Below are positions 1,866 to 64,000 of a stretch of 64,000 nt of DNA, one piece after another. The number at the start of each line of letters is the position of its first letter. Within the stretch, counting starts at the first letter, position 1. A program made the translations under genes and the position numbers. Location of the stretch: the sequence record OR836606.1, one strand, 5' to 3'. The notes beneath the pieces are model-generated. The model did no database searches. It worked only from the letters and a program-made list of their open reading frames with translations, and was not told the DNA's origin.

Positions 1866-3815
1866 TTAAAATACAAAAATTATATTTCCACAGTCATAAA
1901 TTTTGTTTTTATCATTTTCATCCTTTCTTTTTTGTCTTATATAGTTATTCTTTCGATTCCCGTTATTCTTTGAAAAGTTACAGAAATCAGGTTCTGTTTC
2001 CGCTATTGGCAGCATATCATAGCTTTTCATTTTATATGCTACATACGAATCTCTTTTAACTATAAATTTTAAATTTTTGTATTTTCTATTAATTAATTCT
2101 AAATCAAATTTATTATTTGTCATGGTATGATAATTATGACATTTTCTTGTTTCCTTATTATAAGAGAATACTGAAATTAATCTATTCTTATAAATTACTC
2201 CTTTATATTCTGTGTCTCCTGTAACAAATTCTTGTCTAGAATTTTCAAAAAATTCTCTAAATTTATAATAACTAATTGTATCTATTTTTATTGAATTAGT
2301 GTCTATGTCTTCAATATCAAATCTTTTATCAAACATCATTAATTCAGATAAAAATCTACCAAATTTATCCCAGCCAATTCCTTTACTCTTATTAGGAATT
2401 TCATCATCATATATATTCAGTAAATGATAACCTTTATTTTCTAGCATTTTTAATTTTCTTAATTGATGGTATTTATTTGAAGCCTCTGATCTTGTTTCAG
2501 ATGAATGGTATTTGATACCTTGAACTTCAATAGCTAATTTTAAATTTTCTATAACTATATCAATGCCATAAGGTTTGATTAAATCTTCTATTTCATAATT
2601 ATTAACTTCAAAATCTAAACTTTGAATATACTCCCTTACAAAAGTTTCTGTTATCGAGGTACTAGTAGAAGAACATTTAGGACATTGTCTACCTTTAATT
2701 AATAAATCTTCAGCTGTTACTTTAAAAGGTCCATGCTTAAGACAAATTACTTCTTGTTTTTCTTTGATAGTCTTAGGTCTGAATTTATCAATTTTATATT
2801 TATTTTTACCATGTTTACGATCAGTTAATTTTTTATAAAAGTCCTGTCTTTCATTTTCTGTATAGATATTTTTATTTATATATTTAATCTTTCTACTTAA
2901 ATTAGTATTATTATCTTCTATTATTTGATCAACGGTCTTTTTATTTAATTTAGGTTTAATAATTTCCTTTGGTTTTTCAGCTTCTTTATTTTCTTCAATT
3001 TTACCTTTATCCAGTGATTTAATATTCTTTAAGAATTTCTTATTTTCTTTTTCAGAATTAGGTATCTTATCTGGTTCTATATAATACTTTAATTTAGGGG
3101 GATTTAAAACTTCATCTAAAAGTCTTTTATTTTCTTCATTTACGTCTACTTTTTCTTTAGTTTTTTTATTTTCTTTTTCCTTCTCTTCTTTTAATTCTTG
3201 ATATATTTTTTCATTTTTATTTTCTATGAATTTATCTTTCCAACTAGTGTCTTTCTTTTCTTCTTCTGTTTCTTTTTCGCATACAGGGCAACCTTTTTTC
3301 TTTATAAAGAAATCTATTGGAGTAGTAAAGAATGGACCATGCTTTCTACATATAACTTTTTGGTTGGATCTAATTGTTGATGGTTTAAAATGACTCATAT
3401 CATATATTATACTATTATAAGTAAAATTAGCAAAATTTTTGTAAAAGAATTCAATATTTTCTTTACTTTCTTTTTTGCATTCTCTAACTTTTACTTTTAA
3501 TTTGGTAGTACTATCTATATACTTATAGATATTTCTAAGATCTTCATCTAAACCTAACTCATCTAAATTAAAAATTTTAGATTTTTTAATATTTAATTCT
3601 TCTTCCTCTTTCTTAAAGTCTTTATCTAATTTTTTAATGTCTTTAGTGTATTTTAATGTCTTTATTTTATATTCTTTTGTAATATCACTAGCATCTTTAG
3701 TTACCATAATTGTATCCTTATTTAAATCATAATCTTTCTTAAAGTCTTCTAATAAAAATATATAATTATAGCCAAACTTTTCATTTAATGATTTCCTAAT
3801 TTTTGAACCTAACAT
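1866..3815 (-). CDS. Free-standing Hef-like homing endonuclease (CxKHGxF..CPxC Zn-finger repeats plus C-terminal PD-(D/E)XK/Vsr-like domain)
   Basis: Two C(R/L)KHGPF...CPxC repeats; GIDIVIENLKLAIEVQGIKYHS nuclease motif; C-terminal IYDCG motif shared with 4599-6782. Confidence 0.7.
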   Translation of the reverse strand: MLGSKIRKSLNEKFGYNYIFLLEDFKKDYDLNKDTIMVTKDASDITKEYKIKTLKYTKDIKKLDKDFKKEEEELNIKKSKIFNLDELGLDEDLRNIYKYIDSTTKLKVKVRECKKESKENIEFFYKNFANFTYNSIIYDMSHFKPSTIRSNQKVICRKHGPFFTTPIDFFIKKKGCPVCEKETEEEKKDTSWKDKFIENKNEKIYQELKEEKEKENKKTKEKVDVNEENKRLLDEVLNPPKLKYYIEPDKIPNSEKENKKFLKNIKSLDKGKIEENKEAEKPKEIIKPKLNKKTVDQIIEDNNTNLSRKIKYINKNIYTENERQDFYKKLTDRKHGKNKYKIDKFRPKTIKEKQEVICLKHGPFKVTAEDLLIKGRQCPKCSSTSTSITETFVREYIQSLDFEVNNYEIEDLIKPYGIDIVIENLKLAIEVQGIKYHSSETRSEASNKYHQLRKLKMLENKGYHLLNIYDDEIPNKSKGIGWDKFGRFLSELMMFDKRFDIEDIDTNSIKIDTISYYKFREFFENSRQEFVTGDTEYKGVIYKNRLISVFSYNKETRKCHNYHTMTNNKFDLELINRKYKNLKFIVKRDSYVAYKMKSYDMLPIAETEPDFCNFSKNNGNRKNNYIRQKRKDENDKNKIYDCGNIIFVF

Positions 3816-4598: not shown

Positions 4599-6782
4599 TT
4601 AATAAATCATAATAGTTCTACCGCAATCATAAATTCTATTAGGATTATTAGGATCTTTCTTTTCAAGTCTTTTGCTTCGATATTTAACTTTTCCTTTAGT
4701 TCGGAAATTTCTATAATCTGGCGATTCTTCTTCAATACTAACGAATCCATATTCTTTAAATTTATATTTGTTATAAGAATCAGATCTTAAATTAAAAATA
4801 ATATTTGGATATTGATTTAAAATTAAATCAATATCTGCATTGGTCCTATAATTAGTGCAATAATTATTAGATATACCTTTATTATTATAAGAAAATACAG
4901 ATATTAAAGTGTTTTTATAAAAAATTCCTTTATAAAATTTATCTTCTTTATTAAAGAAATCTAAAGAGTGATTTTTATAAAATTCTTTTATTTGTGTATA
5001 ACTTATTTTTCTTATTTCTAAATTATTTTCTATTTCTTTATCAATATTAAGATTTTTATCACCAAACAATAGAATTTCTTTTAAGATTTTACTATATTGA
5101 TTTTTTATATGCTCATACTTGTTAAAGAATTGATCTTCATATAGATTTATTAATTTATAACCTTTATTTTCCATTATATCCATTTTTTCTTTTTGATGCG
5201 TTTTTGCGTAATGTTCATCTTTAATCATATTTGAATGCCATCTTAATCCATTTACTTCAATACCCAAACCAATATCTTCTATAAAAATATCTATTTCTTT
5301 TCTATTACCTAGTATTAATCTATTAGAAATTTTAATATTTTGATACAGAGTATATTTTTTGATAATATTAAATAGAGTATCTTCTAAACTTGAAGGACCC
5401 GCAAATTTACATTTAGGACAACCTCCTCCTTTTATAATATTCTCTACTCTAGATTCAAAATAACCATGTTTTTTACATCCAAATATTGATACAGCTTTAT
5501 CATAATCATATTGAAAATTGAATTTATCTAAAATTAGTTGATCTTTTCTTTTATAACGTATCTTATATTTATAAAATTCATTTTTCTGTTTTTGATTGAA
5601 TTGTATTTTTGCTATCATTCCTTTTTCTCTATTATTTAAGTTCTTATCTTTAAATAACTCAAAAGGTGTATACTTTTTAAAATTGGTTTTAATGCTTATT
5701 AAAGGAATGTCTTTTTTATTTAGAGGTTTTCCTGTAAAATTTCCTGCTTTTTCTCTTTTAATAGCCGCAGTTTTTTCTAAAGCACATTTTCTACAACCAT
5801 AACCATTTGAATGAGATCTTAAAGATGTTCGAACTCTACCATGTTTTTTACATTTTATAATTACATGATCTTTATTAAAATTATTAAATCTTAATTCACT
5901 ATAATCATATTTATTGTTATGGATATAACTTAATTTCATTTTCATAAATTCATTTTTTTCATCAATATTAAATTTTATATAATTCTTACGAAAATCTTTA
6001 TCGCCTTTTTTCCATTTTTTAAACAAAGATTCTGGAGTTTCTTTTTTACTAATAGATGCATTTCTTTTTATTTTTTCTTTAACACAATCAGGACAGCTTT
6101 CATTATTTCTTTTAGAATAGTGGTTTACTGCTATTATTTCAAATTTTCTGTTGTGTTTTTTACATCTTAATTTTAACCTACAATGCCTTCCTGTATATAC
6201 TGCTTCAGAATAATCATATTTCTTTTCATATTCTGGGTGTCTTTTAAAAACATTTTTTAAAAATTGTTCTTTCGTTAAAATTTTATTTTTACTATCTCTT
6301 TCTTTTTGACATTTAGGACAATCTACAAATCTTAATAAATGATTACTTATACTTCTTTTGAAGGTGCCATGTTTTTCACATTTTATTTCTATATAGGTCG
6401 ATTTATTATAACGTTTATCTAAGTCTAAATTAGGATAAGTAAATTTATCACCATATATCTCTTTAAATTTAGATAAAAATTCTCTTCCAGTTAGATAATG
6501 TTTTTCTTCATAACATTTAACACATCTTTTAGCACATTTAGCATTGCCCCATAAATCAAAATATTTCTCATGTCCTTTTTCACATGTATATTTTATTCTT
6601 AAATCTTTTTTCTTCATCCCTTTACTATAATTCAATATCTCTATACTACCACCATAAGCATTAAGTAATTTACTCATACTTTTTTCTATATCTTTTTTAG
6701 TAAATGTAACCATTATCCTTTTCATCTCCGTTAAATTTATTTTTATAATTATGAATGTATATTTTAAATTAATACATAACAA
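4599..6782 (-). CDS. Free-standing Hef-like homing endonuclease with about six Zn-finger repeats (true start probably 6713 or 6725)
   Basis: Repeated CxKHG.F...GCPxC units; KEIDIFIEDIGLGIEVNGLRWHS nuclease motif; terminal RIYDCG. Confidence 0.7.
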   Translation of the reverse strand: MLCINLKYTFIIIKINLTEMKRIMVTFTKKDIEKSMSKLLNAYGGSIEILNYSKGMKKKDLRIKYTCEKGHEKYFDLWGNAKCAKRCVKCYEEKHYLTGREFLSKFKEIYGDKFTYPNLDLDKRYNKSTYIEIKCEKHGTFKRSISNHLLRFVDCPKCQKERDSKNKILTKEQFLKNVFKRHPEYEKKYDYSEAVYTGRHCRLKLRCKKHNRKFEIIAVNHYSKRNNESCPDCVKEKIKRNASISKKETPESLFKKWKKGDKDFRKNYIKFNIDEKNEFMKMKLSYIHNNKYDYSELRFNNFNKDHVIIKCKKHGRVRTSLRSHSNGYGCRKCALEKTAAIKREKAGNFTGKPLNKKDIPLISIKTNFKKYTPFELFKDKNLNNREKGMIAKIQFNQKQKNEFYKYKIRYKRKDQLILDKFNFQYDYDKAVSIFGCKKHGYFESRVENIIKGGGCPKCKFAGPSSLEDTLFNIIKKYTLYQNIKISNRLILGNRKEIDIFIEDIGLGIEVNGLRWHSNMIKDEHYAKTHQKEKMDIMENKGYKLINLYEDQFFNKYEHIKNQYSKILKEILLFGDKNLNIDKEIENNLEIRKISYTQIKEFYKNHSLDFFNKEDKFYKGIFYKNTLISVFSYNNKGISNNYCTNYRTNADIDLILNQYPNIIFNLRSDSYNKYKFKEYGFVSIEEESPDYRNFRTKGKVKYRSKRLEKKDPNNPNRIYDCGRTIMIY

Positions 6783-8431: not shown

Positions 8432-8970
8432 TTTATTTTCACTTCTTTCATTATTTTATTCATATTTAGATGTTATTGAGCATTTTATAATTTTTATATA
8501 ATTAAACAATGTATATGAAGTTAATAGTTATTTTTATATTAAATATTTAATTGTATTAATTTAATAAAGATAATATAAATAGTCAATGATTTATATTAAA
8601 TTAATATAAATTACAGAAATAAATTATGTAAAAACTATAAATTTTTATAATTATGTGATAAAAAATTTGAAAATGCCCGGAATATTATAATTATATTATA
8701 ATAAAATTATAATAATAAATATATTATTCTTATAATATATTTATATAAATTAAAATATTATGAGGGGATAGTACACATTTTTATTTCATAAAAATGTATT
8801 AAGAAAATAACGAACGAAGTGAGTTATTTTATTTATATAAATCCAATTAAAATACATAACAATAATAATCAAAACTATTGTATATAGGAAATTTATTGAA
8901 TAATATTATAAAATAAAAATAATATAAATATATTAATCAATAAAATTAAATACGGAAAGGAATGGCATAA

Positions 8971-11900
8971 TTGAAATATCTTAATAGATTAAAAAATCTT
9001 AAATTCTATTCAATATCTGGATATAAAATTAAAGCTATTGATGAAGAAATCGAAGATAAGAAAAAAGATCAGTTAGTTATTTATAAAGGTTTTAAAGAAA
9101 ATTCATTTACTGATTTTTTAAATAGTGGATTATTATATCATCAGAATTTTAAGAATATCTATATTCCGAGATTGTATAGAACTAGAAATAGAAGAACTAG
9201 ATTATTAACAAATATAACAGATTATCAAAAAGAGATTAAATCTAAATCTTACAAACAGTATAGAGTTGAAAGAAATGAGAAATTATTTAAAGGTAGAAAC
9301 TATATTGTTGATTCAACTAAATTTATTGATTTAGAAGATAAATCATTAATAACTAGAAATTTTAATACAGTATTGGATTCAATTAAATCAACTTTTAATT
9401 CTTTAAATAATGCAGAAGATTACAATAATTTATTATATGTAATTAATGTTGATGGGTATAATAAGTCTTCTCAAGAAGCAATTAGACCTAATACAAAAGA
9501 TTTCATGTCAAGCTTATTCATGATGATTAAGAATCAAGAGGAATTACCTCATGGTGAAAATCAAAATATTAATTTATTATTTGTCTCATTAGATAATGGA
9601 ATAATGTTTAAATTTGATTATAAAGATTATAATAAACTTAATATGAGACTTAGACAAAGATTAAGAAGAATCATTGATACTAATACACAAGCATTAGATA
9701 CTGATGAAATTAGTAAAGTTGAAGATGATGACAATACTGAAGCTGTAGATGGAGTAATTAAAAAGAAAGCATTTGATAATGTAGGAACAATTGATCCTAT
9801 CGAAGCTCAGAACGATGAAGCTGAATATGAAAATGATGAACAGTTAGAAAAAATATCTAATAAAATAGATTCTACAATAAGTTATATTAGATCATTAGAC
9901 AATACTGAAATGGATGTTGATGATGAATATAATATAGCTATGATAATTGAAAAAGAATTAAATAATAATAAAGATTTAATTGATATTGATACTGAAACAT
10001 TATATTCGGATGTATTGGATAAAAATGATTCATTTAAATCAATTAAGAGAAATATTAAAAATAAATCTAGTATTGGCGATGAAGCACTTAAAAATACTAA
10101 AAAGATATTAGCTTTATCCAAGAAACAAGATGAATACCTTAATGATTTAGAGGATTTTAGCTTTTCTGAAGATAAATTAATCGATAGAGAAATTAATGAA
10201 AATATTAATAATATTAATGAAGAGACTATTAATAATATTGCTTCTAATGATTTTGATGTTTCTTATATGCAAAAAACATTTAATAAAGACTTTATTGATA
10301 TAATGAAAAGCTTTAATGACAATGAAGATATTCCGGTATTTATTAATAAAATGAATATTGAAGATAATTCAGATAGTCAATCATTAAAAAATACAGTTAA
10401 AGTTCAATTTAGAAGTCCAGACGGTTTAACTCATAATGTTAAATTTGATGTTCCTAAAGTTATTGACGGTAAGTACATGAAGCTTAACGGTGGGAAAAAG
10501 ATATTAACTAAACAGTTAATGATGTGGCCAATCGTTAAATATAAACCGGATTGTTCATAACAGTCCACTTTTATAGCAATATGAAAGTAAAAAGAATATT
10601 AATTGCTGAAACGGTTTTATTAAATTAATCAGCATCAATTATTATTAATTGTTCAACGACTAAATATATTCACTCTTATTGAGAGTATGATATAGTCTGT
10701 GCTCTAAATTGATAATTTAGAGATTGTATAAAATACAGATAAAAAATTCATATCAGAATTTCTCTTAACATATTTTTATAATATGATTAGGAGGTGAAAT
10801 TAAATGATAAACAAAAACGGAAAATTAGTTAAATCTTTCAAAACTAGAATATACCCAAATCAAGATCAAATAAATTATTTCAATAAATGTTTTGGTGTAA
10901 GAAGAAAAATATGGAATATGGCTTTAGAAGACTATCAAAATAAAGATGATGACGCTCAATTTAGCGGATTTGATTATCAGAAAAAATTAAATAATGAAAT
11001 TTATGAATCTGGTAAATATCCCTATCTTTATGAAGTTAATAGCATGGTTAGACAAGAAGCTTTAAAAGACTTAGATGAATCTTTTAAAATATATAGAAAT
11101 GAACAAAAGAAAGCTAGAAAGTCTAAAGATGCAATTGACACTGAAAAATTTAAACCCAAGTTTAAAAAGAAAAAACATTCTAATGAGTCATTTAGATTTA
11201 TGGTTAAAGATAAGAAATATTTACCTATTAGATTTTTATCTAAGAAATGGATAAAAATTTCCGTAATGAAAGGAATTAAACCTTTTATAATCAAATCTAA
11301 AGAATCAATGAAGTTTATTAATTCTAATAACCATAGATTTCTCACTTACACTATAAGCAGAAAGAATGAAAAATATTATATTTCTGTAACTTATGAGATA
11401 AACAATTATAAGAAACAGAGATTGAATAATGATTCAATTGGTATTGATATGGGTATGAAAACACCATTAGTATGTGTAGATTCAAATGGTCAAACATTTG
11501 AATTTAAAATCCCACATAACTTATGGAAACAAGAAAGAAAAACTGAGAAATTGCAAGCAAAACTATCAAGTAAGAAATATTATTCAAAATCATATTACAA
11601 AACTTTAAAACAATTAAGAAAATCTTATAATAGAGAGTGTAATATATTAGAAGATTATAGAGATAAAATCACTAATTGGTTAGTTAAAAACTATAAAGTG
11701 ATTAATATTGAACCATATAGTCATAAAGCTTCTAATAATTTAAGAAATGCTCGTAGATCTAATAGAAGATTTGGCAAATATGATTTCCTAGAAAAATTAA
11801 AGTATAAGATTTTACAATATGATAATGAATTGAATATAATTACTAAAAAGAAAACTACACAAACATGCTCATCATGCGGTTATGTAAGAACTAACGATGA

Positions 11901-14900
11901 GAAACTTGTCATTGGCGATGATATTCATGATTGTCCTAAATGTAATGTAGTTCTTGATAGAGATTTAAATGCGGCTAAAAATATTCTAGATTTAAAATAT
12001 GTTTAATTAATTTCACAAAATAAAAGATATGAGAGTCGCCTGCGGTCAGCGGGAGACGATAAACGGGTGATAAGCTAATGTCTGATTAGCTTTACAAGGA
12101 GTACAGAGGTACCTCTATACGTTAGTCACTGAGCCAAGTGTATTTTATACAAGATCTTGCCTTTAGATTTAATTATTTAAAATCAAGATTTAACAAGACA
12201 GACAGTATGGATTACAACTAACTATAATAAATTCATTATAGAAAAATTTGGTTATAAAGAAAATGCTGAAACTGAATGGATCAAGAAAGTTATTGAAGAT
12301 GACCAAGTTATAGATTATATTGAAAATAAATCTAACTTATCTGTTAAAAAAGGTAATGCTTCTTTAATCAATAATAAATATGTAACTTCAGTTATTTATA
12401 ATAGCTTATCTAGAAATATATTAAATTTCCAAGATGACACTAATGTACTTGAATTTAATCAAAGAAGTTTATTAGCGATGATTTCTGATAGTGCTAGTTT
12501 ATCTAAAATTGATTATGATCAAGATAAATATTTCCCTATTGGTTATAATATTAATAAATCTAAATTAATATTAGCAGATAAGACAGAATCTGTTATGTAT
12601 GAATGTAGTAAGACTAATATTAAGTCAATGGAAATGAATATATTTGATTACCTTATTGATAAATTAGACAATGAAGTTGACTTTGGTGTTATTGATAAGA
12701 AATTCAGTAAGAATATTCAGGCTAATAAGACTATGGCATTTTCACGTGTTAAAATTACTAATAAATTAGTACCTACAATTTTATTATTAGGTTTCTATAA
12801 AGGTTTAACTAGTATTCTTGATCTTTATGAAGTTGATTATAAATTTACTACTGAGAATGAAAGAATTAGTATTCATGATAAAAAGAATAAAATTAAATTC
12901 CAAGATGGTTATTTAATATACTCTACTGATAAATTAAGATATGATTTATTAATGTCTGGATTAACTGTATTGCCTACATCACAATACAATTTCAGTGATT
13001 TTGAAACTGAAACACCTTACTTAGAATATTTCAATGATAAATTCTACAGTCGTAATGTTGGTAAAGGTATCAAAAATACTATGGATTTAGCAATGGATCC
13101 TATTACTAAAGAAGTATTAAGGGATTTAAAACTTCCTGATAATATGGTTGAATTATTACTATTAGCTAATACGATGTTAGAAGATGTATCAGCTAGAGAT
13201 CATAATGATATGGGAATTTATCGTGTACGTGGCCCAGAACAAATTAATGCATTATTATATAAAATGATGGCAAATGCTTATAAAGAATATTCAGATTCTT
13301 ATAATAATAAAAATCCTAAGAATATTTCAGTTAAACAAGATCAATTAATTAAAACTATTATGGAACAACCTACAGTGGATGAAGTATCTGATTTAAACCC
13401 TAACTTAGAAATAGATAAGATGACTTCTGTTACATTTAAAGGACCTGCTGGACGTAACTCTGAACAATCATATGAACCTGATATTCGTTCTTACGATGAA
13501 AGTATGCAAGGTATATTAGGAATAAGTACACCTGACAGTAATAAGGTAAATTACTTGCCCTTAATTACAGTAATGTAATTCAATGAAAATTTATTAATTG
13601 CTAAAAATCTTTATTAAGATGATCAGCATCACTAAAAATAGTGTTCAACGACTAAATATAAATTCACTTATTATAAGTGTAAGATATAGTCTAATCTGTA
13701 TTAGATTATTATAGAATAATACAAATGAGGTATTGTCAGACAACTTTCATATGATACACAAATTAAATCTACTCGTGGTTATACTGATGGTAGTAAAAAA
13801 GATGTAAGTGATACAGCTTTATACACACCATTAGAATTATTAAATCCATATACTAGTAGACATGCGGATATACGAAATGAGGTAAGTTCGCAATAAAATT
13901 ATTTAATTGCTGGAAAGCTTTATTAAGTTAATCAGCATCAGTTAAAGACTGTTCAACGACTAAATAATAATTACCATTTATATGGTGAAGATATAGTCTA
14001 ATCTATATTAATTTAATATAGAATAATAAAAATGTCACCTCGTATAGGAATGACTGGTATTAAAATGAATGCCCTTTATTATAGTAATATAATATACGAA
14101 AAATATTTAATTGCTAAGAATCTTTAATTAAAGAAATTAGCATCAAATTAATACAATTTGTTCAACGACTAAATAATATTATACTTATTTAAGTATTTGA
14201 TATAGTCTGATCTGTATTAAATTAATACAGTTAACATAAATGACTCAAGCTAAGCATTTAATTGCTACTAAAACAAATGACCGTCCATTAGTTGGTTCCG
14301 GTGTAGATAAATCTTTAGCCTACCAAATTTCAGACACATTTGCTTTTAAAGCTAAAGAAGATGGAAAAGTAACTTCTATTAATGAGAAAACAGGATTAAT
14401 GATTGTTGAATATATTAATGGAGATAAAGATGTAATTGATATATCTGAAAAACTTGCTAAAAACTCTAATGGCGGATTTTATCAAAATAATAAACTTACA
14501 CCGCAATTTGAAGTAGGTAAGAAATTTAATAAAGGACAAATATTAGCTAAAAATGATAATTACTTTGCAGGTTCTGGTAGTAATAATGATATTCAATTCA
14601 CTGCTGGTAAATTATCTAAAGTTGCAGTAGCTAGCTCATATGGTATTATAAATGCCTTTCATTATAGTAATATAATGTATAAAAAATATTTAATTGCTGG
14701 AAAGTCTTTATTAAGACAATCAGCATCATTAATTTATAATGTTCAACGACTAAATAATATTATACTTAATTAATATGTATTTGATATAGTCTAATCTGTA
14801 TTGATTAACTCTTAATGCAGTTAATATAAATGACTTATGAGGACAGTTCTATTATTTCTAATAGTATGTCTGAAGCTATGTCAACTAAAGTTACTATGAA

Positions 14901-15591
14901 GAAAACAGTAAATTTAGCTTCCAATACGAATATTCAATATATTGTAAAAGAAGGTCAAAATGTACGTACAGGAGACCCATTAATGATATTTGAGAATTCA
15001 TTTGATGATGAAGGTATCGGTTCTTTATTAGATAAAATTGGATCTGAATTTGAACAAGAAATCCAAGATATTTCTAATAGAGCTGTTAGATCTAAATATA
15101 CAGGCGTAATTAAGAAAGTAAATATCTATTATAATGATGATATTGAAAATATGTCTCCTACATTAGCTAAATTGGTTAATAGTTATATTAATAAATCTAA
15201 GAATAAATATAAAGAATATAAAAATGCAGTTAAAGGTAACAAATCTACATTACCTGGATTAGATGTAGATATTCCTGCAGTTGAAAAAATCAATAATGAA
15301 AAAATTAAAGGTGAAAAAGTTGATGGTGTTCTTATTGAAATCTTTACAGAATATGAAGATGATATGAGTATCGGTGATAAGATTAGTTTCTATGGGGCGT
15401 GTAAAACGGTCATTGCTGACGTTACTCCACCTGACGAATCCCCTTATGCAGAATATAGACCTGATGAAGAAATTGAAGCTATATTCTCTCCATTAAGTAT
15501 CGTGTCTCGTATGACTACAGATATATATCTCATGTTGTTTACCAATAAAGCACTCATAGAGCTTAAGAGAAAAGTTAAAGATATGCTTTAA
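8971..15591 (+). CDS. rpoB: RNA polymerase beta subunit (probably virion RNAP), spliced from 6 exons, 1417 aa
   Basis: Exons 8971-10551, 12202-13547, 13728-13869, 14035-14058, 14243-14644 and 14833-15591 total 4254 nt and are in frame. Junctions: KYKPD|TVWITT, NKV|GIVRQLS, RHAD|SPRIGMTG|TQAKH, SSYG|TYEDS. Also GDKIS and SPLSIVSRM motifs. Confidence 0.9.
10767..10796 (+). promoter_or_regulatory. Late-type promoter motif and RBS inside In3, upstream of tnpB
   Basis: AACA-TATTTT-TA (10767-10778) matches the AR9 late consensus AACA-N6-TA; AGGAGGTG at 10789-10796. Confidence 0.55.
10804..12006 (+). CDS. tnpB: TnpB RNA-guided endonuclease (intron-encoded)
   Basis: N-terminal HTH (KTRIYPNQDQ); RuvC D/E/D in IGIDMG, INIEP and DRDLNAA; Zn finger CSSC..CPKC. 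Confidence 0.93.
   Translation: MINKNGKLVKSFKTRIYPNQDQINYFNKCFGVRRKIWNMALEDYQNKDDDAQFSGFDYQKKLNNEIYESGKYPYLYEVNSMVRQEALKDLDESFKIYRNEQKKARKSKDAIDTEKFKPKFKKKKHSNESFRFMVKDKKYLPIRFLSKKWIKISVMKGIKPFIIKSKESMKFINSNNHRFLTYTISRKNEKYYISVTYEINNYKKQRLNNDSIGIDMGMKTPLVCVDSNGQTFEFKIPHNLWKQERKTEKLQAKLSSKKYYSKSYYKTLKQLRKSYNRECNILEDYRDKITNWLVKNYKVINIEPYSHKASNNLRNARRSNRRFGKYDFLEKLKYKILQYDNELNIITKKKTTQTCSSCGYVRTNDEKLVIGDDIHDCPKCNVVLDRDLNAAKNILDLKYV
12007..12201 (+). ncRNA. Putative omegaRNA scaffold of In3 TnpB
   Basis: GC-richer stems directly after tnpB (GTCGCCTGC/GCGGGAGAC, AAGCTAAT/ATTAGCTT, AGAGG/CCTCT), ending at the intron 3' splice site. Confidence 0.6.
13548..13727 (+). ncRNA. In4: mini group I intron, 180 nt
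   Basis: Junction AAG GT|A GGT; IGS GCC; core motifs; ends AAAUG. Confidence 0.88.
13870..14034 (+). ncRNA. In5: mini group I intron, 165 nt
   Basis: P1 UGCGGAU/GUUCGCA; P10-like GAGGU pairing with 3' exon ACCUC; core motifs. Confidence 0.9.
14059..14242 (+). ncRNA. In6: mini group I intron, 184 nt
   Basis: Junction GGT|ACTCAAG; P4 GCUA/UAGC; sister of In2. Confidence 0.9.
14645..14832 (+). ncRNA. In7: mini group I intron, 188 nt
   Basis: Junction GGT|ACTTATG; IGS AUGCC; core motifs. Confidence 0.9.
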
Positions 15592-57050: not shown

Positions 57051-60000
57051 TTAGAATTTAATCATATTAGATACAAATGAACTATTTGAAGATTCCAATA
57101 CTCTAACACCAATAGATTCAATAATATCTTTACCTGGTTTAATATGATCTTCAATCATACTATCATAGTCAATAAAAGGTCTAAACTCTTCAGGAATTGT
57201 ATTACCTTCAACTGCAATTACATTTAAACCGTTTTTAACTAAACTTTCATTCTTAAATACTTCTCTAAATCTATCTAAAGTATCTTCATCAGTTATCTTA
57301 TTTTTAATATCTCCAAATGTACTAATATTCAATTTAACTGCTAATATCTTAGCAGGTAATGCTATTTCTTTTTCTGGGAACATTATATTCCATGCTAAAG
57401 CAGCTCTATATGCCATTTGAGAATAAGGGTCTTTATATACCTCAGCATTATTAGCTTTAAACGGTTTTAAGAATTCGATTTCTCCATTATCTAATGATTT
57501 CTTAATCATTTCTTCTATATCTTTAAATTTACGTATTATCTTAATACGATCTACACCGGTTTTATTTTCTAAAATATCTTTTTGTAATATTTCAGTAAAT
57601 AGTTCTCTAATACGTTTATTAGTATTAACTTTTCTAATAGCCATACCTTTAACATCTAAATCTGGAGGTTGAATTAAATTACCCTCTTGTTGAATTACTG
57701 ATGATGCATAAGTTTTCTTTTTATCAGTTGTTAATTGTTTATCAAGTAAAACATTTTTATTAGCTTTATTAAATTAATAAAGATTAGACTATATCTTATA
57801 CTTATATTAAGTACATTTATATTTAGTCGTTGAACTTAATTTCTTAAGCTGCTGATTTAATTAATGAACTATTCCAGCAATTAATAAATTTATCTTTCTG
57901 TATATCGCTATACAACGGAGCATTAACTTGATAATACTCATTTTTCATTGATATTAAACCTAAATGTTCTTCCTCTAATCCTACATCTTTACAGAATCTA
58001 TAGTAAGACAATTCTAATAATTTAGTTATTTGATAGTTAATAATAGATATATTACTTACACGTTGTTCTAATTTATCCTCTAAACCATTCTCTGCAATTG
58101 GAAAATCTTCAGGTTTTAAAGATTTAAATTTTTCGTATAACGGATCTAAGTGAACAAAGTTCATTTATGTTAGCTGTATCAAATATAATACAGATCAGAC
58201 TATATCTTCTTTAGAAATATATTTAGTCGTTGAACTTAATTTCTTAAGCTGCTGATTTGATTAATAAATCATTCCAGCAATTAATATTTTTTATTGACAG
58301 CAATTTTTTATCACAACTGTCAGTATCTATAGTTAATACGCTTCTACGTTTCTTGTAATTCATTCTATACATTCTATTATAATCTTGATAATTATATATA
58401 ACCCAATCTTTTAATATTTCAAATAATTCATCTAATAATGGAATCATATCTTCAGGAGGATCATTTGGATCTAAGAAATCTTCTCTGCCAGTCATTTTAC
58501 TAATTTTATTATCAAATATATCGGTATGATCAATTAACCCAAATAAATTATTTTTGAAATATACTTTATTTTTATCTTCTTGACTTAATTTACTAAATAC
58601 TTCTTCTAACTTAAGAAAATCTTCTTCACTATAATCTTCTTCAACATTAGAAACTAAACCTTCTAAAATTTCTTTATCAGTTGGAATTGATTTTATCTTA
58701 ATATCATGATCTTCATATTTTTCACTAATTATTCTTAATATATAATGATATATTTCATCAATCTTCATGAAAAAGATTTTACCGCCAATAAATCTTTCTA
58801 AAGCTATCGCTGAAGTAGTTACAATATCAACTGCTATATAAATTCGTGAATTTAATTTAATTAATTCGAATTTATTCGACTTCGTCATTACTTTTACTTA
58901 CTTTGCACTTTAAGTTTTTCGTTATAAACTACTTCAACATAAAGTGTCAACCAAAGCAGAGGTTAAAGCTCTTAAGTCATCACATTTGGACATTCAAGAG
59001 AATTTAAATCTAGTTAGCCTGCCCAACAAAACGCTTACCGTACATTTTGAGGTTGACAGCAGCGTTATAATCTCTATCCATTTTATTTCCACAATCACAC
59101 TTATACCATCTATCTGATAACTTCATCTTATTTTCTTTAGTTAAGACTTGACCACAATTAGAACATAATTGAGTTGATGGGAACCATCTATCTGCTACAA
59201 TAATAGTATTACCATTGCTTTCAGCTTTTTGTTTTAATAAAGTTCTGAATTGTCTCCAATTCATTGCAGAAATAGATTTAGACAAATTTCTATTTTTAAT
59301 CATATTTGAAACTTTAAGATCTTCAATTGTAATATACTGATAATTTTTAATTAAGTTAGTAGTTATTTTATGAAGATAATCTTTTTTAATGTTATTAATT
59401 CTCATCCATATTTTTTGTATTTTGGTTTTCAATACATTGTATTTGTTAGAACCATAAACTTTACGAGATAATCTTTTTTGATAGTACTTAATCTTATTGT
59501 ATAGTGGAATCAATTTATCATTTAATGAATGATATTTCTTAAATTTACCGAAATCATCATTAATGATAGCTAAATCTTTTACACCTAAATCAATACCAAC
59601 ATGGCTATTGTTATGAATTAAGCTCTTATTATTATCAACTTTCATTACTATTGAAGCGAAATATTTTCCAGCATATTTAGATATAGTAACTTCTTGAATG
59701 GAATTATAATTAAACGGGATAGATTCTTTCATTTTAATTAATGAATTAATTCCTTGAAGTTTTAATTTATTATTTTTATCGCCTTTAATTTGTAATGAAT
59801 AATTATTCTTCTTATAGAACCTTGTACTTAATTTAGAATGTTTTTTAGATTTAAATCTCGGATACTTACCGTAACCTTTCCACATCATATTAAAAGCTTT
59901 ACCTAAATCTTCAGTTGCTGTGTCCATAACTTGAGATATTTGATCTTTTTCCCAATCTTCTTTACATTTTTTAAGTTCATCACGAACTTTCCTATGTGTT

Positions 60001-61234
60001 GGTTTTGGAAGAGATGTATCAAGTTGATGAGCATTCCACATTTGTTTCCATTTATTAAGCCCTTTATTATAAATATATCTAGAATATCCAAATGCTTGAT
60101 TAAATACTTCTTTTTGTTCTTTATTTGGTTTCAATTCGATTTTAATAGATTTGTACATGTGATTTCACCTCCTTCAAATATATAATATATACTTAAAGTT
60201 AGTGATGAATTTTAATTAAATTAAACTCACGAATTCCTGATTTAGTGTTTCCACATCAGTTAAATAGCAAGACTATATCATATTCTATCAGAATGATAGA
60301 ACCCTCGCACTTCAGGAATATTATTTCCCTACTCTACTCACTTCACATAGTATTTCAACTATGCTTATTCAGGCGTTAATCCTGTGCTTTCGATAGTCGT
60401 TGAACGTTCATCCATCATGTGGATGCTTCGCTGCTAGATTTTCCATTAGTCCACCCTTAGCACTTAATTTACATTAAGCTTTTATTTCAGCCTAGGTAAT
60501 CTTAGAGTATTTTTTCTGATTTTCATCTGCTTTCACGCTATCCATTACTGGTATACGTTGTAGCTCTCTAAGCTTTAGGAGTTTACAAGCAATTCACGAG
60601 GTTTGCTCACTTCTTTCATGAATTAAACTAACTTTAATTCACTATGAAGTAAGGGAGTTTTGATTAACTATTTTAAAATAATTTAAGTGAGCAATTCGTG
60701 TTAAATCACTTAAATTATATTAAACTAAAATAGTTTCTTTTCTCCACTATAAGTAGTTGCTGGACCTGAATTAGCATCATAGAATGTACTATTTTTCTGT
60801 ATCATAGCACCGTAATAACTGTTAGCTAAGATCTTAATTGTTTTTTGTTCATTCATATATTTATCATGTAAAACATCATCTTTACCTTTATAAATAAACA
60901 TATTGTGCTTAGCTACTTTACGAGAATCTATAAAGTCTTTTAACATTTCCGCATTTAAATTTTTTCTTTGTGATTGAGGCTGATAAATAGAACCAGAACC
61001 AGTTACAATTAAATTATTATTAATAATTTGTCTTAAGGTTGTATCTACATTCATTTTTTGTCCTGATATTTCTATTAAAGCTGGATCTAAATGTTTTTTA
61101 ATATATTCTCTACAGGCATTAATTAGTTTCTCATCATCAATATCAGGTTTTCTTATTTTAATTAATTTAATTAAATTTTCTAAATAACCCGTTATAGCCC
61201 TTTTACGTTCATATTTATTATCTTGATTAGACAT
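57051..61234 (-). CDS. Split family-B DNA polymerase, C-part (motifs B and C), spliced from 4 exons, 644 aa
   Basis: Exons 61234-60742, 58830-58316, 58161-57936 and 57751-57051 total 1935 nt and are in frame. KILANSYYG, TYSG-V|DIVTT, IDTDS|NFVHL, MKNE-F|LLDK..KKTYA. Confidence 0.88.
57752..57935 (-). ncRNA. In15: mini group I intron, 184 nt
   Basis: P1 GAGU/GCUC; P2 UGUAUA-GCGA-UAUACA; core motifs. Confidence 0.9.
58162..58315 (-). ncRNA. In16: mini group I intron, 154 nt, directly after DTDS
   Basis: P1 UGACAGU/GCUGUCA; core motifs. Confidence 0.92.
58831..59050 (-). ncRNA. Putative omegaRNA scaffold of In17 TnpB
   Basis: Structured region overlapping the tnpB 3' end (CTCTT/AAGAG stem; AACTA pairing with TGAAG-TAGTT), continuing to the 3' splice site. 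Confidence 0.55.
59010..60158 (-). CDS. tnpB: TnpB RNA-guided endonuclease (intron-encoded)
   Basis: KIELKPNKEQ HTH; RuvC VGIDLG, ITIEDL, DRDYNAA; Zn finger CSNC..CDC; GGAGGTG RBS. Confidence 0.93.
   Translation of the reverse strand: MYKSIKIELKPNKEQKEVFNQAFGYSRYIYNKGLNKWKQMWNAHQLDTSLPKPTHRKVRDELKKCKEDWEKDQISQVMDTATEDLGKAFNMMWKGYGKYPRFKSKKHSKLSTRFYKKNNYSLQIKGDKNNKLKLQGINSLIKMKESIPFNYNSIQEVTISKYAGKYFASIVMKVDNNKSLIHNNSHVGIDLGVKDLAIINDDFGKFKKYHSLNDKLIPLYNKIKYYQKRLSRKVYGSNKYNVLKTKIQKIWMRINNIKKDYLHKITTNLIKNYQYITIEDLKVSNMIKNRNLSKSISAMNWRQFRTLLKQKAESNGNTIIVADRWFPSTQLCSNCGQVLTKENKMKLSDRWYKCDCGNKMDRDYNAAVNLKMYGKRFVGQAN
60182..60197 (-). promoter_or_regulatory. Early-type promoter-like motif inside In17, upstream of tnpB
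   Basis: Minus strand TAAGTATATATTATA versus the recurring TAAATATATATTATAA. Confidence 0.5.
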
Positions 61235-61712: not shown

Positions 61713-62372
61713 TTATTTAAAATTTTCATTTATTTTATATTTTTTAACTTCACTTTCAGAAAGTTCTTCAATTATACTATTCCTTCTGGTATTAAATACA
61801 ATTTCAATATCTTCTAAATAAAATATATTACTATCTTCTATCTTCCCATTTTTAAATAAAGATAGATTAAATGAATATATTTTCCATCCTAAAATAAATT
61901 TAATTTTGTTTAGAATAGAGCAAACTACATTTTCAAAATTATCTTTATCTGTATGGATTATAACATCGTTATCCGAATATTCTATATGAAATTCTTCATT
62001 TAAGTCTATTAAAGATATTTTAGTTGCATGTAAATCATAATATACACCTAAATCTAATTTCAATTCAATATCAGAACGATACTTAGTGAATAATATAGAA
62101 ATAAAATTATTATTATCAATATCACTTGAAAATACTAATGACACATCATTTTTATTTAAATTATTCGAAATAAAATCTTGGATTAAAATTTTAAAATATA
62201 AGAAAAAGCTGATTTTATCATTTAATTTAAACACATTATTTTTTCTTAAGTTTACATCTTTAGAAAAATTGAAGTTCAAATAATTAATTTTTAATCTATA
62301 ATAAAAAGAATCATCGTTGAATCTCAATAAATTTGTATAGTGATTTATTAATTCATCTCTAAATTTTTCCAT
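61713..62372 (-). CDS. Distant paralog family member
   Basis: C-terminal IEELSESEVKKYKINENFK. Confidence 0.7.
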   Translation of the reverse strand: MEKFRDELINHYTNLLRFNDDSFYYRLKINYLNFNFSKDVNLRKNNVFKLNDKISFFLYFKILIQDFISNNLNKNDVSLVFSSDIDNNNFISILFTKYRSDIELKLDLGVYYDLHATKISLIDLNEEFHIEYSDNDVIIHTDKDNFENVVCSILNKIKFILGWKIYSFNLSLFKNGKIEDSNIFYLEDIEIVFNTRRNSIIEELSESEVKKYKINENFK

Positions 62373-62394
62373 TCAAAATTTCCTTTCTCACTGT

Positions 62395-63108
62395 TTATTC
62401 TAATTCTAATCTTTCGTATCCTAAATAACCTTTAGCTTCTTGTATATTATTGTACTTATTAATTACATTAACTAAACTATGTCTTAATCTATGATAAATA
62501 GGTCCTTTAAGACCATCTATTTCATAATCAATGAACATGATCCATTTATTTAATAATTGATCATCAATTTCAATTATTAAATTACTATTCATCAAATATT
62601 CAAATAATGATGTTAAATGAGGATTAGACATTAAACCTTTTAATCTATCCAATGGAACATCTTCTCTAAAATTAGTATATAAAAAATAAGCTAAGTCTTT
62701 GCTATCAGTTTCTTTTATATTAGATTTAATATTTTTTAATCTAGTAATAAATAAATTTTCATTACTGATAGTTTTATCAATTGGATCAATCATTTTAAAT
62801 AATCTAGAGATAGAAGCTTTTCTTATTAAATTAGTTAGAAATTCATCTGGTTTTTTATTTATAAATAAACCATTTGATTCGAAATTATCTATAACAAAAT
62901 CTATAAATCTATTATATTTATCTAATTCTTTTTTAGTAAATAGAGTAGTATCTAAGTTGTTATTAATATAACAACTTAAAATATTACTTTCTATTAATAA
63001 TTGAAATGAAACCATATTAAGCGCAGAAGGATCATCTAAATTAATACTCATGATATGGTCTATTCTAATATCATTTCTATTTTTTAATTTTTCTTCTTTA
63101 ACTAGCAT
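62395..63108 (-). CDS. Hypothetical protein
   Basis: 237-aa ORF with RBS. Confidence 0.7.
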   Translation of the reverse strand: MLVKEEKLKNRNDIRIDHIMSINLDDPSALNMVSFQLLIESNILSCYINNNLDTTLFTKKELDKYNRFIDFVIDNFESNGLFINKKPDEFLTNLIRKASISRLFKMIDPIDKTISNENLFITRLKNIKSNIKETDSKDLAYFLYTNFREDVPLDRLKGLMSNPHLTSLFEYLMNSNLIIEIDDQLLNKWIMFIDYEIDGLKGPIYHRLRHSLVNVINKYNNIQEAKGYLGYERLELE

Positions 63109-63122
63109 AAGCGGATTCTCCT

Positions 63123-64000
63123 TTAAATAAATGTCTTTTTAATTGTTTCATTCATAATTAATCTCTTTAATTTTCCTTTAGACATTTTAACAAGTGTAGA
63201 TGTTTTACTGTATTTCTCATTTGAAATATTAAATGTATTGTCTTTCATATTCATGTATTCTTTAACAAATTGTCTTTTCTGATTTTCCGTAAAATTATTT
63301 TCAATTAATTTTAATATCTCTTTAACTGCAATATCAGTATATTTATTAGCTGATTTAAAAGATAATAAGAATGATACCTCTTTATAAATATTATCTATTA
63401 ATGTAAAGAAACCAATTTTTGAAAAATATTTAACTTTATCTTCATTCTCAGCTTCCTGTATTTTATCGGTAAAATAATTATAATTTATTCCATTATTATA
63501 TCCTAAGAATTCATGTCCATATAAATTATCTATACCTAATACAAATCTTTCATATAAATAATATTTATTAAATTCATCATATTTAAGACTATTTATTTTA
63601 GACTCCATTAATAAATCTGCGTACTCTAGATCTTCTTTACTATTAATATGATTATTAAATAATTTATAAAAATTGTTTATAATTTTTAATTTAAGCACAT
63701 TATCTTTATGTGAAATATCCAAATCTATTAAACTAGATAATAGTTTCATAAATTTCTTTTTATCACCATTAAACGATAATTTAGTATCTAATAATTCTTT
63801 ATTTAAATTAAAAAATTTATTATTACTTATTTCATCCATATCATTAATGAATTCATCTATATATTCTTCTTTTAATAATCCAAATGAAAAATTTTCATAA
63901 GAAGATTTAAAACTATAAAGGAATTTAATGTTTTTAATATCATTATCTTTACAAAATTTATTTATATAAAATATTAAAGGTAATTGAGATATATTTAAAA
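63123..64000 (-). CDS. Hypothetical protein, 5' end beyond the right window edge
   Basis: The frame of track ORF 63123-63839 stays open to the window end (53 more codons). Confidence 0.7.
   Translation of the reverse strand, partial: LNISQLPLIFYINKFCKDNDIKNIKFLYSFKSSYENFSFGLLKEEYIDEFINDMDEISNNKFFNLNKELLDTKLSFNGDKKKFMKLLSSLIDLDISHKDNVLKLKIINNFYKLFNNHINSKEDLEYADLLMESKINSLKYDEFNKYYLYERFVLGIDNLYGHEFLGYNNGINYNYFTDKIQEAENEDKVKYFSKIGFFTLIDNIYKEVSFLLSFKSANKYTDIAVKEILKLIENNFTENQKRQFVKEYMNMKDNTFNISNEKYSKTSTLVKMSKGKLKRLIMNETIKKTFI

Follow-up and report, generated by a model that had tools for sequence, protein, structure and literature searches.

A transposase-less IStron in the virion RNA-polymerase gene of Staphylococcus jumbo phage LY01, a candidate RNA-guided homing intron

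A 64,000-nucleotide stretch of DNA, hereafter the window, was analysed, which corresponds to bases 124001-188000 of Staphylococcus phage LY01 (OR836606.1, 258,897 bp), an AR9-like jumbo phage isolated on S. aureus from a pig farm. At positions 10552-12201 on the plus strand, the gene for the virion RNA-polymerase beta subunit (rpoB) is interrupted by an element that is, with near certainty, an IStron without the transposase TnpA. It combines a compact group-I-type ribozyme core, a gene for the RNA-guided nuclease TnpB and a structured 3' region resembling an omega RNA. RNA-guided homing of this element is plausible from its comparison with related phages, and we infer that such homing, or cleavage of competitors, is its best-supported function. 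The comparison set consisted of LY01 and nine public relatives, namely Madawaska, MarsHill, Machias, S6, PALS_2, UFV_DC4, SA1, PB50 and AH12.

In the mechanism proposed here, rpoB would be transcribed through the element and the ribozyme would join positions 10551 and 12202, so that the polymerase subunit is still made. TnpB would be translated from its own ribosome-binding site, and unspliced transcripts would give an omega RNA whose last ~16-20 nt (ACAGTATGGATT...) derive from exon 2. TnpB loaded with this RNA would cut DNA where an NGAT-type motif abuts the guide sequence, which would be the case only in the intron-less allele of a co-infecting relative. Repair by recombination with the intron-bearing genome would then copy the element along with a few flanking bases, or the cut would damage the competitor. 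First arrival at new sites would have needed another route, most likely a Y1-type TnpA acting in trans in the past. On the comparative data, the full mechanism of splicing, omega RNA formation and TnpB-driven homing is considered moderately probable. The more specific account, in which an IStron lineage gave up its transposase and survives in lytic, uracil-DNA jumbo phages by RNA-guided intron homing alone, with TnpB cutting intron-less alleles and so both copying the intron and handicapping competitors, is put forward tentatively, as a possible rather than a probable explanation.

The gene at 8971-15591 is rpoB according to the annotations of Madawaska, Machias and SA1. The element boundaries given by an earlier sequence-only reading of the window proved correct to the base, since exactly these 1650 nt are missing from rpoB of Madawaska, MarsHill, SA1, Machias and AH12. 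In the alignment, LY01 8900-10550 and 12202-13548 match adjoining bases in Madawaska and SA1. Once joined, the LY01 flanks align without gaps to all five empty rpoB alleles and read ...MMWPIVKYKPD/TVWITTNYNKF (the slash marks the junction here and below). Splicing of all six rpoB exons gives a protein of 1417 amino acids with 91% identity to the uninterrupted SA1 protein and a single gap column. Because the spliced product is colinear with this intron-less homologue, the interruptions are introns, and a split gene was ruled out. The element edges coincide with the predicted splice sites in LY01, and removal of all five copies known from LY01 and Machias leaves open frames. The features of the gene and the element, all on the plus strand, are as follows.

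8971-10551: rpoB exon 1, colinear with the uninterrupted SA1 gene
10546-10551: last six bases of exon 1, CCGGAT; 5' strand of the paired region P1 and candidate transposon-adjacent motif (TAM)
10552-12201: whole IStron, 1650 nt, consisting of group-I-type core, tnpB and omega-RNA-like 3' region
12202-12221: start of exon 2 with the predicted guide ACAGTATGGATTACAACTAA; the five copies have unrelated 3' flanks, and the guide role is taken from the published IStron/IS605 architecture
12202-13547, 13728-13869, 14035-14058, 14243-14644 and 14833-15591: rpoB exons 2-6, from the spliced product compared with SA1
13548-13727, 13870-14034, 14059-14242 and 14645-14832: four mini-introns in rpoB without an open reading frame (ORF)
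10552-10738: compact group-I-type ribozyme core, from comparative structure and covariation
10563-10566: internal guide sequence GTCC of the core
10568-10589: P2 hairpin with GNRA loop
10594-10599 / 10666-10671: P3
10604-10609 / 10629-10634: P4 (P and Q boxes), with P5 between its strands
10636-10651: P6
10658-10662 / 10693-10697: P7 (R and S boxes, GACUA/UAGUC)
10672-10686: P8
10702-10722 and 10725-10737: P9 and P9.1
10739-10803: spacer 5' of tnpB with the Shine-Dalgarno sequence AGGAGG at 10789-10794; 89-96% identical among copies
10804-12006: tnpB, 400 amino acids, IS200/IS605-type RNA-guided nuclease, from Pfam domains and structure matches
12007-12201: omega-RNA-like scaffold, 195 nt, from consensus fold, z-score and limit of conservation
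12035-12057: stem 1 (GUCGCC..GGGAGAC), followed by GAUAAACG
~12066-12096: stem 2
12101-12120: stem 3, variable
12151-12191: stem 4
ending at 12201: tail AACAAGACAG, last base G

The 5' ~185 nt of the element form a core that is common to it and the four mini-introns of rpoB, as had been noticed from the sequence alone. Pairing of GUCC at 10563-10566 with the exon end GGAU places a U.G pair at the 5' splice site, and the final intron base is G (12201). We take the order of the conserved boxes to be that of the classical group I P, Q, R and S elements. P4, P5, P7 and P8 were recovered by RNAalifold from nine copies, with compensatory changes in P8. A strict motif search found 30 such cores in LY01, in which paired changes occur in P3, P4, P5, P6 and P8, with P8 missing from some of them. 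Judged by comparative structural analysis, on which the group I assignment rests with Rfam remaining silent, the core is a group-I-type ribozyme, presumably self-splicing. Regarding the subclass, a resemblance to the phage IA type is seen in the R and S boxes as well as in the larger homologous introns of two phage-like metagenome contigs (L015 and L016); the IA2-defining peripheral domains are for the most part absent, and no covariance model matched. Duplex folding for an inverted repeat around the ORF or for a P10 pairing gave no interpretable pairing. As the element shows, a group I core that escapes standard models can fit into ~185 nt.

The presence of an intact 400-amino-acid TnpB with its D-E-D residues could be substantiated. 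The Pfam domains HTH_OrfB_IS605, OrfB_IS605 and Cas12f1-like_TNB were all matched, and the protein aligns over its full length with the ISDra2 TnpB structures 8bf8, 8exa and 8h1j (E-value 2e-19). The RuvC residues D215, E303 and D387 and the zinc finger C355/C358/C377/C380 are invariant in the five copies and nearly so in 31 homologues. Among the five tnpB copies, the ratio of nonsynonymous to synonymous substitution rates (dN/dS) is 0.11-0.29 at dS 0.5-0.75. The noncoding parts are 89-96% identical among the copies and the synonymous sites of tnpB just ~55-63%. As judged from these substitution patterns, the tnpB copies are old and their nuclease function was kept by purifying selection without a TnpA in the LY01 genome. 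The spacer at 10739-10803 is more conserved than tnpB itself and holds the hexamer TTAACA followed by an AT-rich stretch. The same hexamer recurs at 12190-12195, 12 nt before the right end. The spacer could act as a promoter of the phage or as a signal for processing.

More distant TnpB relatives with 45% identity were found on the two metagenome contigs mentioned above, in each case preceded by a larger intron that has this R/S core, and in neither case with a TnpA. Protein-based locus searches found distant relatives only and identified no bacterial source; identity did not exceed 32% in IMG/VR or 38% in bacterial genomes, and Staphylococcus was not represented. In the public annotation of these phages, the nuclease is named 'transposase' or 'hypothetical', and rpoB, gyrB and the DNA polymerase gene appear fragmented.

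The region downstream of tnpB (12007-12201) folds better than shuffled controls, with a z-score of -2.4. A consensus fold of seven homologues, five close and two distant, contains 47 pairs, of which 20 are compensated on both sides, and the sequence of one hairpin differs in four of the five close copies. The likeness among the five copies ends exactly at ...GACAG (12201), which agrees with the structured 3' region ending at the splice site in the sequence-only reading. Stem 1 followed by GAUAAACG also recurs in seven unrelated GC-rich metagenome contigs (L225, L226, L229, L239, L274, L279 and L292), where it follows a TnpB ORF or overlaps its 3' end. These seven are the real TnpB 3' ends in a 15-mer scan that otherwise returned mostly chance matches. 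Since it is present at the 3' ends of other TnpB ORFs, the stem 1 module belongs with the nuclease and not with the intron. GUCGCC..GGGAGAC with GAUAAACG may be a widely conserved omega-RNA module without an Rfam family. Exact-pattern scans with the long omega-RNA motif gave zero matches in GTDB genomes, IMG/VR and JGI metagenomes.

A hidden Markov model built from 33 Y1 TnpA sequences was searched against the six-frame translation of the complete LY01 genome. It detected no Y1 TnpA in the whole genome, window included (best E-value 0.22, compared to 6.5e-32 for a control fragment), so that the absence of tnpA first noted for the element and the window extends to the rest of the genome. A TnpA elsewhere in LY01 was ruled out as well for the genes annotated as 'mobile element protein' or 'transposase', which are further TnpBs. 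TnpA is also absent from all five copies and from both 45%-identity relatives. In a tblastn search with TnpA, 115 phage records were matched, and Staphylococcus was not among the ten organism names that occur most often in them; beyond these ten, the truncated table leaves room for a Staphylococcus match. A TnpA-bearing member of this element lineage was found neither in the LY01 genome nor on the contigs of the two 45%-identity relatives nor in the GTDB, IMG/VR and JGI searches. Without TnpA there is no excision and no vacant donor site to re-fill, and the retention of TnpB is therefore not explained by excision repair. As far as the genome sequence tells, the published 'restorative' role of TnpB does not apply unless TnpA comes from outside.

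The protein search found four further copies, one in LY01 and three in Machias, and all five sites are different. The copies reside in rpoB, in gyrB, in a virion protein gene and in two large genes for hypothetical proteins. On the 5' side they are flanked by CCGGAT, GCGGAT, TCGGAT, CCGGAT and TTAGAT, hence CGGAT in four cases and TAGAT in one, with NGAT common to all. The 3' flanks are mutually unrelated, and there is no target duplication. All copies interrupt open frames, in phase 0 and immediately behind a GAT codon for Asp. Their likeness starts directly after the 5' flank and stops at ...AACAAGACAG, or at ...AACAAACCAG in one copy. The copy in Machias gyrB is 85% identical to the LY01 rpoB element and has identical edges. 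It splits gyrB at LEGLEAVRHRSD/MYVGAIDG, despite an annotation that places it upstream of the gene: in the Machias record (227907-229552; L003 3994-5646), gyrB is annotated from after the element and its first exon as intergenic, the true start being at L003 3923. The pentamer TGGAT occurs shortly after the junction in rpoB exon 2 (12208-12212) and at Machias site c (L013, +4-8 nt), in the contexts PD/TVWI and PD/VWM. Near both junctions, the intron guide sequence thus has another perfect match, which may be due to chance or may hint at the choice of new sites.

Since all five insertions are private, the sites must have been occupied de novo, and homing with a guide taken from the flank is not capable of this by itself. 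This is where a conventional non-autonomous IStron has to be considered, which would be mobile only with a Y1 TnpA supplied in trans by the host, a co-infecting phage or an extinct autonomous copy, and whose TnpB would be restorative only. Five private sites that have only a 5' NGAT in common and lack target duplications are the signature of IS200/IS605 TnpA (PMC4227781), and TnpB is of the ISDra2 type. The ancestral empty sites are mostly TGAT or CGAT, near the classical TTGAT, and for this reason a past TnpA in trans is the most economical route for the first arrival. As a complete explanation it is nevertheless unlikely: neither the LY01 genome nor the leading names among the matched phage records point to a TnpA source, purifying selection at dS 0.5-0.75 is hard to explain with an absent TnpA, and the patches of foreign sequence at the junctions described below indicate recombinational acquisition instead of clean transposition.

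Pairing between exon and intron varies in concert. Exon position -4 is G at four occupied sites, as opposed to T, C or A in the empty alleles nearest to them; in occupied gyrB, this is seen as the Ser codon TCG compared to AGT in the empty allele. At the fifth site, the exon keeps A at -4 and the intron guide is GUCU instead of GUCC. The probability that position -4 differs by chance at all four sites is ~2e-6. This covariation of P1 argues that splicing is under selection. The motif GGAT cannot simply be read as a TAM, because only GAT is common to all sites and position -4 pairs with the intron guide.

The same pairing could be read as a trace of colonisation at the RNA level, in which the excised intron would reverse-splice at a guide-complementary GGAU and be copied to DNA by a phage reverse transcriptase before recombination, with no role of TnpB in mobility. 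Every site does end in GAU, complementary to the guide sequence, and LY01 encodes an RVT_1 reverse transcriptase. This route is nonetheless regarded as very improbable. The nearest empty alleles mismatch the guide at -4 in four of the five sites, so that full P1 complementarity was apparently not an entry requirement, unless the donor alleles differed. Selection on TnpB and the conserved 3' RNA would be left unexplained, and the copying of a 1.65-kb reverse-spliced group I intron RNA back to DNA is a rare route. The reverse transcriptase gene lies outside the window on the minus strand (LY01 record 73311-74813; L178 24311-25813), encodes 500 amino acids and is annotated as retron-type. Such a gene was reported in the relatives with no function assigned (Korn et al., bioRxiv 10.1101/2020.12.14.422802).

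Evidence for homing comes from the purifying selection on TnpB in a genome without TnpA and from the sequences flanking the elements. Machias site c has 16 differences from the clade-mate PB50, eight of which are clustered at +12..+37 (P ~1e-7). All eight are synonymous and of the LY01/S6/SA1 type, which is that of the other clade, and AH12 is like PB50. In Machias gyrB, five of the eight differences from S6 fall within -25..+6 (P ~4e-5). In rpoB, a stretch of 130 nt is identical between LY01 and both MarsHill and Madawaska except at -4, +3 and +6; with three of 30 differences at -4..+6, this signal is weak (P ~0.013). Foreign-sequence patches are thus located beside at least two insertions. 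The simplest reading of these patterns is that the elements arrived by homologous recombination from intron-bearing donor phages, together with a few flanking bases. Such an arrival would also account for the TCG codon and for G at position -4, with no need for several point mutations. The junction footprints support a homing-type acquisition, for which we infer the direction and the nuclease responsible.

Predicted cross-targets exist among the relatives. The guide of Machias site d has a 17-nt match in PB50 next to an identical TAGAT, and the guide of the Machias gyrB copy has an 18-nt match in LY01 gyrB, but next to GTGAT. For rpoB itself, the target was originally proposed to be a CCGGAT TAM followed by the 3' guide, contiguous only in an intron-less allele. 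The TAM-like 5' flank, the unique 3' flank and the adjoining of both flanks in five relatives hold up. The full motif does not, as all copies have only NGAT in common, and none of the five alleles is a perfect target. They read CTGAT/ACTGTT, CTGAC/ACTGTT, CAGAC/ACAGTT, CGGAT/ACAGTT and CAGAT/ACAGTT, compared to CGGAT/ACAGTA in LY01.

Several points weigh against RNA-guided homing by TnpB. All five empty rpoB alleles have T for A at guide position 6, and four of the five differ in CGGAT. The NGAT/GGAT motif is explained as well by P1 pairing as by a TAM, and is a candidate TAM only. Every insertion occurs in a single one of the ten genomes, the other nine being uninterrupted at its site, and same-site spread, the hallmark of homing, is not directly seen among these ten, a small sample for this comparison. 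At gathering and at permissive (E-value <= 10) thresholds, Rfam yielded no group I or omega-RNA family match for the window and related loci. Uracil substitution of the DNA is presumed for the phage group (Korn et al., bioRxiv 10.1101/2020.12.14.422802), and a TnpB may not cut such DNA. The same study reported many free-standing homing endonucleases and variable intron positions in this group, and these enzymes could make the breaks instead.

This last point leads to collaborative homing, in which a free-standing homing endonuclease would make the break and TnpB would be kept for cutting competitor or host DNA or for modulating splicing. Such a process presumably also moves the mini-introns. 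The cores of this family are 165-190 nt long, end in ...AAATG and occur four times as mini-introns in rpoB and at 26 further places in LY01 (loci L177-L181 and other parts of the window), and Rfam detects none of the 30. A TnpB of the element's family is associated with just two of the 30 cores, while ~28 have the same core and no ORF, and the occupancy of the ORF-less sites varies among the relatives. In addition to the multiple homing endonucleases and variable intron positions already cited, a report on the jumbo phage PhiPA3 describes an intron endonuclease acting in interference competition (PMC11620839). On the other hand, a free-standing enzyme would have to be of a different specificity at every one of the five unrelated sites, no copy has lost its RuvC triad, and the TnpB-bearing copies combine an NGAT flank with an omega-RNA-like region abutting the exon, so that the flank would supply a guide everywhere. 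For the TnpB-bearing elements, collaborative homing is accordingly judged improbable, and RNA-guided homing by TnpB is retained as the preferred explanation.

Two details of the mini-introns in rpoB concern their exons. The mini-intron at 13870-14034 follows GCGGAT (13862-13869; Asp codon, phase 0), the same flank as in the copies with TnpB. Either this copy lost the cassette or, equally conceivably, it was always without it. The adjacent exon at 14035-14058 (SPRIGMTG) sits between two mini-introns and is unusually short with 24 nt, as the two adjoining group I introns must each pair with it.

The IStron architecture found here is as published (PMC4227781; bioRxiv 10.1101/2023.11.20.567912) and hence does not represent a new kind of system; the roles given here to TAM, guide and splice sites are backed by the mechanism published for IStrons. 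What is new is the setting, namely a minimal core, a lytic uracil-DNA phage, essential genes and the lack of TnpA. A paper on MarsHill, Madawaska and Machias (bioRxiv 10.1101/2020.12.14.422802) reported introns and did not mention TnpB or IStrons. The closest match is with the group A IStrons of the survey by Tourasse et al. 2014 (PMC4227781), such as CdISt1 of Clostridioides difficile. Like the LY01 element, they have a 5' group I intron with the IS200/IS605 ORF B downstream, are inserted after a conserved pentanucleotide ending in GAT or TAT whose last base U is paired to a guide G, and have a variable 3' flank, no target duplication and a 3' end ...CAG. They are intragenic in unrelated genes, and copies without ORF A are common, some of the surveyed IStrons being located in C. 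botulinum phages. They differ in that they follow the T-rich TTGAT, ATTAT or TTTAT, compared to (C/T)(G/A)GAT in LY01, end in TCAG instead of ACAG or CCAG, and reside in Firmicute or Fusobacterium chromosomes instead of a lytic jumbo phage. All of the surveyed IStrons had introns of subclass IA2. The ~185-nt minimal core, with ORF-less copies filling the same genome, also sets LY01 apart from group A.

The IS607-type group B IStrons, including CboIStron and those of the C. botulinum phages c-st and D-1873, were studied by Zedaveinyte et al. (bioRxiv 10.1101/2023.11.20.567912). There, the TAM overlaps P1, the 5' splice-site helix, and the omega RNA spans the 3' splice site, so that splicing and guide formation compete, and TnpB was shown to cut the vacant site and promote retention. 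The first two features have predicted counterparts in LY01, and the phage-borne cases are like LY01. CboIStron is unlike LY01 in its serine-recombinase TnpA, its G-rich TAM (TGGG), its 5' exon ending in G and its full-size IA2 intron, whereas the LY01 element has a TnpB of the IS605/ISDra2 type and no TnpA. ISDra2 TnpB with its omega RNA (8exa, 8h1j) agrees with LY01 in its RuvC D-E-D residues, its zinc finger and a 3' guide RNA that stops where the element ends on the right. ISDra2 is not intronic, has a TnpA partner and uses a TTGAT TAM; its similarity to the LY01 protein is distant (E-value 2e-19), and the LY01 TAM is a candidate only. The classical counterparts of the proposed function are T4 td/I-TevI and the intron endonuclease in the PhiPA3 RNA-polymerase gene (PMC11620839). 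They likewise involve a self-splicing intron in an essential phage gene, cutting of the intron-less allele at co-infection, co-conversion of flanks and possible use as a weapon against related phages. These endonucleases recognize DNA through protein contacts, whereas the LY01 nuclease is predicted to use an RNA guide copied from the exon.

Homing-like activity of TnpB is known from bacterial chromosomes, where TnpA makes the empty site that TnpB re-fills. True intron homing by TnpB alone has been put forward only as a hypothesis so far, in a 2026 review stating that TnpA-less IStrons could spread in this way if TnpB is active (PMC13565253). The phages analysed here offer a direct test, with no TnpA, a TnpB and RNA long under selection, and essential host genes that make splicing obligatory. 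They also offer frequent co-infection with relatives holding natural empty sites, and footprints resembling co-conversion. If the proposed function is true, this would be the first natural RNA-programmed intron homing endonuclease, and the nuclease might also be a compact one that copes with uracil DNA and has an NGAT-type, non-T-rich TAM.

The sequence-only reading needs one correction, in that the window contains a second TnpB gene as part of another, unrelated IStron:

58832-60741 (approximate ends), minus strand: second IStron, family 2, splitting the gene for the DNA polymerase catalytic subunit; TnpB and a larger group-I-like intron

Its TnpB (59010-60158, minus strand) has 381 amino acids and is 31% identical to the first, and the intron comprises ~480 nt. 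LY01 contains three TnpBs of family 2, annotated as 'mobile element protein' or 'transposase', the others being located at 62341-63483 and 230287-231435 of the record. The empty site AGTGGT/GTTGAT is present in MarsHill and other relatives. The element ends in ...TATAGCAG, and its 5' exon seemingly ends in G, as in group B IStrons. With insertion after GGAG and the end GCAG, it is like group B CsISt1, which is inserted after AG and ends in CAG (PMC4227781), and CboIStron and group B are resembled more by this second IStron than by the element at 10552-12201. The family-2 intron also resembles one in Listeria phage LPJP1.

Near rpoB, two large ORFs on the minus strand (1866-3815 and 4599-6782) have weak matches to the restriction-endonuclease-like domains MTES_1575, DUF559 and DUF723. 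Based on these matches, they may be free-standing homing endonucleases.

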